Below, piece by piece: positions 46,975 through 52,775 of a DNA stretch of 64,000 bases. A model generated the notes under the pieces. That model had not been told where the DNA came from and ran no database searches. It worked only from the letters and a program-made list of their open reading frames with translations. Location: positions 248,001 through 312,000 of the IMG/VR virus record IMGVR_UViG_3300044640_001495; one strand, 5' to 3'. Positions within the stretch are counted from its first letter, which is position 1, and every line of letters begins with the position of its first letter. The position numbers and the translations under genes were made by a program.

Positions 46975-47440
46975 ACACATAGACCTCTTTAAAGAAATAA
47001 TTCCAGCAGTTGATCTTGGAATGAAAGACTTATGGGATGCCGCCACTGATGATGGAAGGAAAGAGATCAAAGGAGATTTCTGGAATCTTAATAGATATAT
47101 CAGCAGTGTTAAAAGCAGTGATCGGTCGCTTCAAGAGCATTTTGTTTTGACCGTAAATGAATACTACAATAAAAATTGGAATAATATTCAAAAACATCCC
47201 AAACTGGTTTGGCAGTCGTTGTGTGCCTGTAGTAGAGGCACAGGTCAAACCTATTTTCATGAATGGATTCCTCTTAAAAAACAAAAAAATAAAAAAGTAG
47301 ATTTTCTAGCAGAGCTGTTTCCGAACATGAAAATGACAGATGTTGAAACTCTAGCAGCAATAACTACAGACAAAGAAATAAAAGAATATGCTAAGGACCT
47401 TGGTTGGGATAAGAAGCAAATTGCAGACATTAAATTATAA
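46964..47440 (+). CDS. probable clamp-loader small subunit, gp62-like
   Basis: Helical pattern LNRYISS..VNEYYN..HPKL.W..EWI loosely follows gp62; replisome context. Inference. Confidence 0.45.
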   Translation: MANKHIDLFKEIIPAVDLGMKDLWDAATDDGRKEIKGDFWNLNRYISSVKSSDRSLQEHFVLTVNEYYNKNWNNIQKHPKLVWQSLCACSRGTGQTYFHEWIPLKKQKNKKVDFLAELFPNMKMTDVETLAAITTDKEIKEYAKDLGWDKKQIADIKL

Positions 47441-48107
47441 GTGCGAATACTGCGGCAAAGAATTTGTCAAAGAAAAAACTTTGGCTGTGCATGTCTGTGA
47501 ACAGAAACGTAGACACATGAGCAAGAATGAAAGACATGTTCAGGCAGGCCTGTTAACATTCCAACGATTTTATGAACTGGCACAGCGAGGTTCTAGTCCC
47601 AAGACCTTTGATGATTTTGCAGGTAGTTCATTCTACAATGCCATGGTAAAGTTTGGTAGTTTTCTTGTAAACACTGCTCCTATCTATCCAGAGAGATTTA
47701 TTGACTTTGTGGTCAAGAGTGGAGTAAAACTAGATCATTGGTGCAGAGATGAACTTTATGATACCTATATCAGTGAGCTGATAAAAATAGAACCAGCAGA
47801 CGGTGCAATACAGAGAACCATCAAAACCATGATGGAATGGAGTGATGCTAACTCAGCCCCCTGGGAACACTACTTTCAATACGTTAATCTCAACCGCGCT
47901 ACGCACGATATCAAGGAAGGATTGATTAGTCCGTGGATGGTGTTAAATAGCAAGTCGGGGAAGGAAATGTTAAAGCGTATGAATGATGAGCAACTAGATA
48001 TAGTTGGTCCAATTATTGATCCTAACTATTGGTCCAGACGTTTTAAATCTTTACCCGCAGATGTAGAGTTAGTTAAAGACGTCATCAAGGAGGCGAAAAT
48101 ATTATGA
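47421..48107 (+). CDS. C2H2-type Zn-finger hypothetical protein (probable TTG start 47421)
   Basis: YKCEYCGKEF..EKTLAVHVC N-terminus. Confidence 0.65.
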   Translation: MQTLNYKCEYCGKEFVKEKTLAVHVCEQKRRHMSKNERHVQAGLLTFQRFYELAQRGSSPKTFDDFAGSSFYNAMVKFGSFLVNTAPIYPERFIDFVVKSGVKLDHWCRDELYDTYISELIKIEPADGAIQRTIKTMMEWSDANSAPWEHYFQYVNLNRATHDIKEGLISPWMVLNSKSGKEMLKRMNDEQLDIVGPIIDPNYWSRRFKSLPADVELVKDVIKEAKIL

Positions 48108-48352
48108 TTTATAAGAAAAGAAAAGAAGAAGCAAGCGCACCACCTGTAGAAGACGAAGAAGTAGAGTTAGCACACAACGAAGAACATATATCTAGAGACG
48201 ATATAGACATTGAGATAGTGATTGCGGAAGATTCCGACGATGTATTTGTAAAATTTACGGGGTTCAATGATCGCGAAGATTCTGAAGAGTATGCACAGTT
48301 TCTAGCAGATACATTGCCTTTGCTATTGTTTGAAACCACGAGATTGAACTAA
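48104..48352 (+). CDS. small acidic hypothetical protein
   Basis: Translationally coupled on both sides. Confidence 0.65.
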   Translation: MIYKKRKEEASAPPVEDEEVELAHNEEHISRDDIDIEIVIAEDSDDVFVKFTGFNDREDSEEYAQFLADTLPLLLFETTRLN

Positions 48353-48930
48353 TGCCGGATATTGACATAGACTTTGTAGACCGCGATCAAGCATTAAAAT
48401 TGTTTGAACACATCCCTGCCAGTAGACTAGACAATCAACGATTGGTCAAGCATAACACAGGTGTATATCTACACGCTGTTCCTGTAGATGCAGTTAGTGG
48501 TCTATGTCAACTTCCCTATGAACAGGCAGAAGAAGAAAAGTATTTTAAAATAGATTTTCTCAATGTTGGAATTTATAAAGGTGTTCGTGATGAAGAACAT
48601 CTAGTTTATCTAATGAATCAGGAGCCACTATGGGACTTACTTCAACAAGACGAATTTGTAAATCTGTTATTTCATTTGAACGGGCATGGAGATATAATCC
48701 GGAAGACCCTACCGACTTCCGTGGAACAATTATCTGCCGTCCTAGCTATGATCCGCCCAGCCAAACGTTATCTGATTGGGAAGCCTTGGACGACGATCAT
48801 GACGGAAGTATGGACCAAGCCAGAGACTGGTGATTACTACTTTAAGAAGAGTCATGCCACTGCCTATGCTGTTGCTATCGTTGTACAGATGAATTTAATC
48901 TGTGAACAGATTAGTTATGGATTCCAATGA
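48352..48930 (+). CDS. miniature family-C (DnaE / Pol III alpha) polymerase core
   Basis: PDIDID, KHNTGVY, FKIDFLN, LAMIRP, YYFKKSHATAYA occur in DnaE order within 192 aa. Confidence 0.8.
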   Translation: MPDIDIDFVDRDQALKLFEHIPASRLDNQRLVKHNTGVYLHAVPVDAVSGLCQLPYEQAEEEKYFKIDFLNVGIYKGVRDEEHLVYLMNQEPLWDLLQQDEFVNLLFHLNGHGDIIRKTLPTSVEQLSAVLAMIRPAKRYLIGKPWTTIMTEVWTKPETGDYYFKKSHATAYAVAIVVQMNLICEQISYGFQ

Positions 48931-49487
48931 ACTTTGATGCCTTTAGCAGTGCTCAGATACAGAGCAAGATTTGGCTCGTGGATCGATTAGAGCGTACACT
49001 TGAAGAACATAGACCTATTGAGGACGGTTATCGTATATGGATTTTAGCGGGATGGTATGCCTTGGCTAATTTTTTAATCCGTACTAGAAATAAAATACCT
49101 GTGCTGGAGGTCCGTAGCTTTGACCAAGATCCCGCATGTGAACCTATAGCAGAGGCCATCAACAATCTATGGGTCTATCGAGCTTGGGAATTCAAGGCAC
49201 ATACCGTTGACATCAATCTGTTGGAATATAAACCAAGACCAGATGTGATTATAAATTCCAGTGTTGAGCACATGACTTCGAGTCAATGGTACGCAAATAT
49301 CCCAGCGGGCACAGTGGTATGTCTACAGGCCAGCGATATGCTAGATGAGGATCATGTTAATTCTATGTCCAGTATCAAGGACCTAATGCTAAAGTACCCC
49401 ATGAGCGAACAGCTCTACGATGGCATTAAAAGATTTGAATTTGAAGACAAGGCCTTTAATCGAGTAATGATTATTGGCATCAAGTAG
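48927..49487 (+). CDS. class I SAM-methyltransferase-like protein, substrate unknown
   Basis: ILAGWY (motif I-like), RSFDQD, DVIINSSVEH. Confidence 0.6.
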   Translation: MNFDAFSSAQIQSKIWLVDRLERTLEEHRPIEDGYRIWILAGWYALANFLIRTRNKIPVLEVRSFDQDPACEPIAEAINNLWVYRAWEFKAHTVDINLLEYKPRPDVIINSSVEHMTSSQWYANIPAGTVVCLQASDMLDEDHVNSMSSIKDLMLKYPMSEQLYDGIKRFEFEDKAFNRVMIIGIK

Positions 49488-49851
49488 CCCGTCTAACCAA
49501 TGTGATTGATTTGCGCTTGATACGTTTTACAATGATATTATTAAGGCTGGTACAGGGACCAAATAACACCTTGACATCTTTGGTTGAAAAGTTTTTGATG
49601 GTGTATCGGAAAGCATAAATTTCTTTAAGTAAAAATATATTAATAGGAATCTGTCTATTTGATTCCCACCACCAAACTTCTCCTAGTTCTAAGAATTTTG
49701 CTTTTTCTTCTTCAGTTTTGATGTGTGCATAGTCATACATGCTGGTGATAGCAGAATCTTGGTTGATTATGATACCCACATATTCCTGATCAACGTGGGT
49801 TACAACACTGATAAAAGGAAAGTTTTCTTGTAAGTTATGTGTGATTCTCAT
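49480..49851 (-). CDS. hypothetical protein
   Basis: Protein-like (LGEVWWWESNRQIPINIFL); divergent from 49881. Confidence 0.65.
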   Translation of the reverse strand: MRITHNLQENFPFISVVTHVDQEYVGIIINQDSAITSMYDYAHIKTEEEKAKFLELGEVWWWESNRQIPINIFLLKEIYAFRYTIKNFSTKDVKVLFGPCTSLNNIIVKRIKRKSITLVRRAT

Positions 49852-51728: not shown

Positions 51729-51837
51729 AAAAATATTAGATTTTATTTTATATCCGTGGCACAAGTATCAAGAACGCAAGGCATGGAAAAAACGTTTAGA
51801 AGAATTGCGTAAACGTGATCCATTTATCTACAAATGA
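51721..51837 (+). CDS. 38-aa peptide ending KRDPFIYK (absent from the ORF track)
   Basis: MIKKILDFILYPWHKYQERKAWKKRLEELRKRDPFIYK*; GGAGA SD upstream; ATGA overlap with the carbamoyltransferase start. Confidence 0.75.
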   Translation: MIKKILDFILYPWHKYQERKAWKKRLEELRKRDPFIYK

Positions 51838-52775
51838 TCATGTGGGGGGTAAATGCCCTTAATCATGGAAGTAGTCTTGCTGTATTCAAGGACGGCAGTC
51901 TGTGGTCCAATCAAGTGGGTTCTTCGGATGAATTAGACAGCAAAATAATTACCGATGCCCTGCATCTTGGAGCACCAGATCGTATCTTTTGGTACGAACG
52001 ACCCTGGATAAAGAAAGCAAGACAGGCATACGCAGGACAGTGGCATCGTGCCTTAGATATGAAGGTACTTCCACGTAGATATATGAAAGCGCAACATTAT
52101 GCTCCGATCACTTATACACCGCATCATGGTAGTCATGCAGCCGCAGGCTACTATACCAGTCCTTTTAATCATTGTGCTATTGTGGTACTCGACGCCATAG
52201 GTGAATTTGAATGTGCTACCATATGGGAAGGCCTACACGGAGAAATGCGCAAAGTGTGGAGCAGAAGTTATCCTAATAGTCTAGGGCTATTCTATAGCGC
52301 ATTTACTAACTTGTTAGGAATGACTCCAATACAAGACGAATATCTATTGCAACAAATGGCTAAGAAGGGCGACCCACATCGTTATAAACATGATGTTCAC
52401 AAATACATGAGCGGACTATTAATCTCTGGTAAGAACATGCACAAGGGCATCCTCGATTGGCCGCATGACATTGGAAATGAACAAGACCGTTACGATATTG
52501 CTGCCGCAGTTCAACGAGTGTTTGAAGATCAAATCCGTATGGTTATGCTAGAAGCTAAGAAATTAGTCAACACTGACTGTCTAGTTTATATGGGCGGTTG
52601 TGCTATGAATTCAGATGCTAATAAACGATTTGTGGAACCTGCATTTAAGTACAGGTGGAGTTTACCTAATCCAGGAGATCCATCTAGTTCTATCGGAGCA
52701 GTCTTGTATCACACTAAACAACGAGAGTGGAAATACAACTTTGGTGTTGCAAAGCACCTAGCAATTAGTGTATAA
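51834..52775 (+). CDS. carbamoyltransferase, Kae1-like N-terminal domain only
   Basis: NHGSS, HHGSHAAAGYYTSPF, LDAIGE, SLGLFY, MGGCAMN, PGDPSSSIGA; no GPRALG/YrdC-like domain follows. Confidence 0.85.
   Translation: MIMWGVNALNHGSSLAVFKDGSLWSNQVGSSDELDSKIITDALHLGAPDRIFWYERPWIKKARQAYAGQWHRALDMKVLPRRYMKAQHYAPITYTPHHGSHAAAGYYTSPFNHCAIVVLDAIGEFECATIWEGLHGEMRKVWSRSYPNSLGLFYSAFTNLLGMTPIQDEYLLQQMAKKGDPHRYKHDVHKYMSGLLISGKNMHKGILDWPHDIGNEQDRYDIAAAVQRVFEDQIRMVMLEAKKLVNTDCLVYMGGCAMNSDANKRFVEPAFKYRWSLPNPGDPSSSIGAVLYHTKQREWKYNFGVAKHLAISV

Follow-up and report, generated by a model that had tools for sequence, protein, structure and literature searches.

A reduced DnaE relative of a lake-water T4-like jumbo phage is very probably the metal-binding half of a split, two-gene Pol III alpha-like enzyme

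A split, minimal version of the bacterial Pol III alpha subunit has already been described in the 'group 2.2' jumbo phages (Iyer et al., 2021, Viruses 13:63, PMC7824862). There, the enzyme consists of a C-terminal piece of about 190 aa, with Mg- and template-binding motifs, and an NTP-binding N-terminal piece of about 155 aa, which are encoded by distant genes, come without any other Pol III domain and accompany a family-B polymerase and T4-like replication genes. In the same article, a role in one-strand synthesis or repair was only conjectured, and an ancestral-like state of Pol III was suggested (Iyer et al., 2021). Earlier genome papers on phages CBB and Atu_ph07 had reported a 'truncated' Pol III alpha as well as an epsilon-like exonuclease. 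In our search of the literature, no biochemical, genetic or functional study of any member of this split enzyme was found.

The bacterial enzymes DnaE and PolC (structures 2hnh, 3e0d, 5lew and 3f2c) share with the phage pair the Pol-beta-like palm with its three catalytic carboxylates, as well as the RP and KSH elements of the fingers, in the same order. Nevertheless, they are single chains of about 1,160 aa, whereas the phage pair amounts to 347 aa in two chains, without PHP, thumb, beta-clamp motif, HhH or OB and with most of the fingers deleted; moreover, the GRGS motif, which lies within the single chain of DnaE and PolC, is supplied in trans in the phage enzyme. The RP and KSH elements of DnaE contact the incoming nucleotide and the template and face the nascent base pair, and the KSH histidine is the reported sugar steric gate. 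Cyanobacteria (Ssp and Npu DnaE) also have dnaE divided between two genes that lie far apart, with products that have to be brought together. There, full-size halves separated at a different site are ligated by protein trans-splicing through a split intein, whereas neither phage piece has room for one.

The gene studied here belongs to an uncultivated, T4-like jumbo phage from lake water. The window, the whole stretch of 64,000 nucleotides that was analyzed, corresponds to positions 248001-312000 of a virus record of 353,123 bp, whose completeness CheckV puts at 98%. The ORF of interest, referred to below as the C piece, and its motifs are located in the window as follows:

48352..48930, plus strand: C-terminal subunit of the split minimal Pol III alpha-like enzyme (192 aa, open, ATG start)
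48358..48372, plus strand: codons of D3-I-D5-I-D7, in which D3 and D5 are the counterparts of catalytic carboxylates one and two of DnaE
48448..48468, plus strand: KHNTGVY motif (K33-Y39), where the palm restarts after the site of the deleted thumb
48547..48561, plus strand: KIDFL motif (K66-L70), with the third catalytic carboxylate, D68
48751..48759, plus strand: IRP motif (I134-P136), counterpart of FRPGP in the DnaE fingers
48841..48867, plus strand: FKKSHATAY motif (F164-Y172), counterpart of FNKSHSAAY in the DnaE fingers

The ATG of the C piece shares bases with the stop codon of an 82-aa ORF on its 5' side (TAATG), and its own stop codon shares bases with the start of the next ORF, of 186 aa (ATGA); thus, the gene is part of a tightly packed string. 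The original prediction had described this ORF as a miniature DnaE-like polymerase on the basis of motifs arranged in DnaE order. All of them are present in that order, namely MPDIDIDF (residues 1-8), KHNTGVY (33-39), KIDFL (66-70), IRP (134-136) and FKKSHATAY (164-172), and there is little or no variation in the catalytic and finger residues among 87 full-length homologs. Indeed, D3, D5, K66, D68 and P136 do not vary in this set, which includes the three catalytic Asp residues whose conservation had been proposed as a check, and D7, H34, G37, I134, R135, K165, H168 and A173 are conserved at 90% or more. We take D3 and D5 to be D401 and D403 in E. coli DnaE numbering. The spacing of the motifs reflects the reduction of the protein, with only 25 residues between D7 and K33 and about 27 between RP and KSH. 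The DnaE finger segment containing the arginines of LRRAMGKK has no counterpart, so that nucleotide binding may differ from that of DnaE, judging from the sequence and from the role generally attributed to these arginines.

The C piece was matched by PHROG 11778 ('DNA polymerase') with an E value of 6e-64 over profile positions 8-194 of 197. A Pfam scan, in which the DNA_pol3_finger model was included, gave no match to the C piece even at E 1, and a single-sequence phmmer search against the PDB returned weak collinear matches to DnaE (E 1.2), in which the start of the piece was aligned with MPDIDIDF of M. tuberculosis DnaE1 (residues 413-420). When a profile of the C-piece family was compared with the PDB, only DnaE chains were found below E 0.9, including E. 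coli 2hnh at E 4e-6. In this comparison, D68 was placed on D555 of E. coli DnaE, and IRP and FKKSHATAY were aligned to residues 639-641 and 739-768, respectively, of the same protein.

Structural comparison pointed to the same family. The AlphaFold model of the C piece alone reached a pLDDT of 96.7, and the top 17 Foldseek matches to it were all C-family polymerases. The model was superimposed on PolC 971-1296, Taq DnaE 461-841 and E. coli DnaE 400-784 with Z 9.0-9.4, the fold alignment to PolC/DnaE covering 185-188 of its 192 residues, and the next unrelated chain after the C-family polymerases scored Z 3.1, in line with the DnaE palm fold that had been anticipated. The fold corresponds to the palm and finger core of DnaE, from which about half of the span 400-784, thumb included, has been deleted. 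Taken together, the C piece is a real, drastically reduced relative of DnaE/Pol III alpha. Its structural alignment starts at residue 400 of E. coli DnaE. The piece begins at the catalytic DxD strand and lacks the N-terminal half of the Pol-beta-like palm, GRGS motif included. C-family catalytic subunits contain a complete palm with GRGS in one polypeptide, and the C piece does not.

The other half of the palm, the N piece, was found in the same genome, outside the window and on the same strand, 176 kb upstream of the C piece:

Genome G000:C1:119779-120246 (the same as L001:1285-1752), plus strand: N-terminal subunit, 155 aa, with a Pfam DNA_pol3_alpha match
Genome G000:C1:119779-122586 (the same as L014:5780-8587): gene string of the N piece, with GroES/gp31-like, MazG-like NTP pyrophosphohydrolase and gp44-like clamp loader genes

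A search of the whole record with PF07733 matched the N-piece ORF at G000:119995-120237 (profile positions 15-95, E 8e-12 and 2e-11), and the protein belongs to PHROG 11127 (E 8e-39). It carries the triphosphate-binding motif GVGRGSS and represents the NTP-binding part of the DnaE palm. The N piece ends in ...EEFFKEI and the C piece starts with MPDIDIDF; since in DnaE the MPDxDxDF strand directly continues the end of the N piece, the two ORFs are adjoining halves of one palm. Therefore, the C piece is very probably one half of a two-gene enzyme, the one that binds metal, the nucleotide-binding half being encoded elsewhere in the genome. Of the original description, the reduced DnaE relative holds, whereas the stand-alone 192-aa enzyme is not supported, because the GRGS half is a separate gene. 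The remainder of a split DnaE was thus recovered as far as the palm is concerned, but not with respect to the PHP, thumb, HhH, OB and clamp-binding parts, which are absent from the split enzyme. Indeed, the PHP model PF02811 had no match anywhere in the genome even at E 10, while a control search was positive in 14 of 14 genomes, and neither DNA_pol3_finger (PF17657) nor HHH_6 (PF14579) matched the whole genome at the same threshold, extending to the entire genome the lack of PHP, finger and HhH domains first noticed in the ORF. A family-B polymerase, which the genome had been expected to encode, was detected as an 892-aa ORF (DNA_pol_B, E 7e-29).

Both pieces correspond to the families of the described enzyme (PHROG 11778 for the C piece and PHROG 11127 for the N piece), and the phage agrees with the group 2.2 members in piece sizes and motifs, in the distance between the genes, in the lack of other Pol III domains and in its family-B polymerase and T4-like replication genes (Iyer et al., 2021). 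The abbreviated Pol III cores of jumbo phages that the original prediction mentioned, with no demonstrated function, agree with that account. The architecture is therefore not a new discovery, and the present gene adds a member to a described split enzyme. It differs from its relatives in the extra 186-aa ORF that follows the C piece.

The relationship between the two pieces is reinforced by three natural fusions of both halves (P0074, P0273 and P0274; 375-376 aa), which were found on separate metagenome contigs. Fused genes are located as follows:

L006:1066-2193, metagenome contig: fused mini Pol III gene, a single-chain version of the split enzyme
L015:519-1649, metagenome contig: fused mini Pol III gene, a single-chain version of the split enzyme

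In P0074 (375 aa), the C piece occupies residues 190-371 and the N half matches the 155-aa N piece with E 2e-22; the other two fused proteins are 78-81% identical to P0074 and come from other sources. Compared with the phage's own genome, the fused protein gave exactly two matches, residues 76-185 to the N-piece ORF and residues 187-371 to the C-piece ORF. A small balanced set of N pieces, C pieces and fused proteins, from which linker and end positions were taken, indicated a linker of about 10 residues between the halves, with the N piece ending 8 residues before the start of the C piece in the fused relatives. As neither piece has room for an intein and the N piece stops 8 residues short, their predicted assembly would have to be non-covalent. 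Intein-mediated trans-splicing was considered and rejected: the pieces abut in the fused relatives, joined by a short linker only, with no extra sequence.

The model of the fused protein was moderately confident (pLDDT 71). It resembled Taq DnaE (Z 20.6), M. tuberculosis DnaE1 (Z 20.1) and PolC (Z 18.9), and matched E. coli DnaE over residues 270-773, from the first residue of the palm onward, with Z 14-15. The best chain outside the C family was a CCA-adding enzyme (Z 4.2), followed by other Pol-beta-like transferases. When the separate N and C pieces of the phage were modeled together, the predicted complex scored 0.91, against 0.01 for the best of 3 controls; this mark is attained by 51 of 78 solved complexes and by 2 of 108 mismatched pairs, and, since structures of intact DnaE exist, it may partly reflect what the model has learned from them; it indicates likeness to the DnaE palm and does not prove binding. 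The predicted interface comprises 174 confident contacts, among them C-piece residues 1-9 around the catalytic Asp residues.

The genes downstream of the fused genes are homologs of the corresponding window genes (E 3e-8 and 1e-16), and hence the fused genes occupy the locus of the C piece. When a tree of C pieces was built, the three fused proteins grouped as a single shallow clade within the split forms (SH-aLRT 82-94 for the groups around it), which suggests a secondary fusion, the tree being midpoint-rooted only. On the same topology, with the same rooting, the fused form is not favored as the ancestral one. Almost all members of the family are split at one and the same point.

Both pieces also travel together across phages. 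By tblastn, 96 isolate phage records contained the C piece, and the N piece occurred in the same set of jumbo phages, which includes RaK2, K64-1, GAP32, 121Q, PBECO4, PA5oct, Atu_ph07 and others; at least 22 isolate records appeared in both lists, and the pieces were always tens to hundreds of kb apart. Five further phages, among them the 141-kb Alishewanella phage Slicko01, each carried both pieces 11-224 kb apart. Among IMG/VR records with a C piece, both of those at least 90% complete had an N piece (about 180 and 208 kb away), as did two of five incomplete fragments. Thus, both pieces occupied distant sites in every complete related genome tested. The Alishewanella phages Slicko01 and Slickus01 (OQ508956.1 and OQ508957.1; 141 kb) have their two pieces about 11 kb from each other, and as these are non-jumbo phages, the system is not confined to jumbo genomes. 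In MH494197.1 (Escherichia phage CMSTMSU, UNVERIFIED_ORG; L011), both pieces occur only as short fragments with in-frame stops; lying among many tiny annotated ORFs, these look like the product of sequencing or assembly error rather than biology.

The family is abundant beyond isolates. Homologs of the C piece formed 418 clusters (50%-identity representatives) among 1.84 billion representative proteins and were present on no fewer than 598 contigs of IMG/VR; for the N piece, more than 7,900 metagenomic proteins were found. Megablast of the 6-kb neighborhood of the C piece against isolate phages gave no match; at the protein level, the closest isolate homolog among the matches listed was that of Atu_ph07 (54% identical). 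Sequence almost identical to window positions 47388-49487 (0.99-1.00 of sampled words shared) recurred in at least 14 DNA runs from lake water, dated 2020-2024, and the phage therefore represents a recurrent freshwater population. Contigs from four freshwater RNA libraries, belonging to 90-95% relatives, cover the C-piece gene, which is no proof of transcription. A scan for sigma-70 promoters and terminators around the gene remained at chance level (30 found versus 27.9 expected).

The surroundings of the C piece in the window include the following ORFs:

47388-48107, plus strand: 239-aa ORF, PHROG 11058 (E 4e-60)
48104..48352, plus strand: acidic 82-aa ORF, given as context only
48927-49487, plus strand: 186-aa ORF overlapping the C-piece stop codon
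50706..51728, plus strand: Toprim DNA primase of 340 aa (Pfam Toprim_2; PHROG 47 'DNA primase', E 6e-27)
51834-52775, plus strand: 313-aa ORF with a carbamoyltransferase N-terminal domain (PF02543, E 6.5e-26)

The order in the window, phrog_11058 protein, small ORF, C piece, reverse phrog_11637 ORF, virion structural protein and Toprim primase, is the same around the C piece in phages Phosso and 121Q. The primase lies 1.8 kb downstream, and its proximity is conserved synteny in related phages, not evidence of partnership. The 239-aa ORF showed a weak N-terminal match to a C2H2 zinc finger (E 0.0034, under the Pfam cut-off), and ORFs of similar size are also found two genes 5' of the C piece in 121Q and Phosso. 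The 82-aa ORF had no Pfam or PHROG match and was not homologous to the ORF that takes its place next to the fused gene. As for the 186-aa ORF, it also had no Pfam or PHROG match, and it falls into viral clusters that a protein atlas names automatically as 'class I SAM-dependent methyltransferase', which is a lead only. It is missing at the C-piece locus of Phosso, 121Q and the fused-gene contig, and related RNA-library contigs gave zero coverage at 49001-49400, one of them joining 48857 to 49663; it looks like a strain-specific insertion. The carbamoyltransferase-domain ORF just downstream of the primase is unusual for a phage replication module.

On the other side of the split, 1.4 kb separate the N piece from the gp44-like clamp loader gene downstream of it (PHROG 168, E 1e-77), and in SCTP-2 it is found three genes upstream of the clamp loader. 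Also outside the window, a 197-aa ORF (genome G000:C1:33784-34023) gave a weak DnaQ/RNase_T-like match below threshold (E 2.8e-4; 19.3 bits, cut-off 24), and may be, judging from this similarity, the epsilon-like exonuclease reported in CBB and Atu_ph07.

A scheme in which two separately encoded halves build one enzyme would account for these data. The C piece would contribute the three metal-binding carboxylates, D3, D5 and D68, on the palm sheet, along with a pared-down finger core (R135/P136, K165 and H168), and the N piece would provide the triphosphate grip via GRGS. By parallel with DnaE, the KSH histidine of the C piece may act as a sugar steric gate. The two pieces are predicted to associate non-covalently and to rebuild one C-family active site, equivalent to about residues 270-773 of E. 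coli DnaE minus the thumb. The heterodimer could then work as a distributive, low-processivity, template-dependent DNA polymerase auxiliary to the family-B replicase, possible tasks being gap filling, repair or the extension of short primers. The lack of PHP, thumb, clamp-binding motif, HhH, OB and a site at which a proofreader could dock makes a distributive polymerase the most likely form. The family identity of both pieces and the split architecture are held with great confidence, and the assembly of N and C is predicted by modeling, whereas we infer catalysis and the biological role. Taken as a whole, the explanation of a split two-gene minimal C-family nucleotidyltransferase that assembles into an auxiliary template-dependent polymerase is considered probable; for its last component, templated DNA synthesis by the pair, the chances appear about even. 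Against the whole explanation stands the fact that there is no thumb or clamp contact to hold primer-template DNA.

This same fact feeds the best surviving alternative, which we nevertheless regard as rather unlikely: the two-subunit enzyme would be as described, but its activity would be something other than templated synthesis, for instance template-independent terminal transfer, the making or extending of primers in association with the primase, polymerization of modified nucleotides, or synthesis of oligonucleotides or signals. All the parts with which DnaE holds duplex DNA (thumb, clamp-binding, HhH and OB) are missing, Pol-beta-like non-templated transferases are weak structural neighbors (Z 2.5-4.2), the C piece is found 1.8 kb from the primase in several phages, and the N piece lies near a MazG-like NTP pyrophosphohydrolase. 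Nevertheless, similarity to replicative C-family polymerases (Z 13-21) is far above that to any non-templated transferase (at most 4.2), the RP and KSH finger motifs are nearly invariant, and the link to the primase reflects the common genome order of related phages and is not specific. Template-independent synthesis, handling of modified nucleotides and signal synthesis had all been offered in the original prediction as activities of the ORF. They are speculation, and the stronger structural match of the models to replicases, with the retained finger motifs, disfavors non-templated and signaling activities.

That the 192-aa C piece is a self-sufficient miniature polymerase is very improbable: it does contain all three catalytic carboxylates and is predicted to fold confidently by itself (pLDDT 96.7), but the GRGS half of its palm is missing and encoded by its own gene in all complete related genomes that were tested, the halves are fused in natural relatives, and the very large predicted N-C interface, with its 174 confident contacts, includes residues 1-9. 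Just as improbable is that both pieces are decaying remnants of a captured dnaE without catalytic function, as their extreme reduction, the split gene and the lack of a demonstrated function might suggest, because both persist as intact, abundant ORFs (418 clusters and at least 598 contigs; more than 7,900 N-piece proteins) with the same split point in nearly all members, the catalytic residues of the C piece are invariant, with no relaxed selection on them seen in 87 homologs, and RNA-library contigs of 90-95% relatives cover the gene, although this does not prove transcription.

Returning to the split two-gene polymerase, a bolder version of it can be formulated, in which some 350 residues in two chains form a working templated polymerase, the smallest known C-family enzyme, possibly with an assembly-gated hand-off or an ancestral-like character. 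We consider this version doubtful. The N subunit is encoded in a clamp-loader module and the C subunit in a primase-helicase module, and activity may therefore be gated by assembly. The active site would exist only when both modules are expressed, and the enzyme might extend primers as a hand-off polymerase, working between the phage primase and the family-B replicase, or represent an ancestral-like state of Pol III.

Three aspects do not appear in the sections of Iyer et al. (2021) consulted, namely the rare natural fused forms, the occurrence of N and C pieces in Alishewanella phages of 141 kb, which are not jumbo phages, and the linkage of the N piece to the clamp loader. The fused single-chain proteins would provide convenient material for biochemistry. 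The annotation of the ORF at 48352-48930 should be corrected to one subunit of a split enzyme, not a complete miniature polymerase. This split enzyme is abundant, and it is conserved in a large clade of T4-related jumbo phages that has RaK2, 121Q, PA5oct and Atu_ph07 among its members. If active, it would mark out the minimal core with which the bacterial replicase family can carry out catalysis. A polymerase active site formed jointly by two gene products would be an unusual case, and these phages would then possess, in addition to the family-B replicase, a second polymerase.
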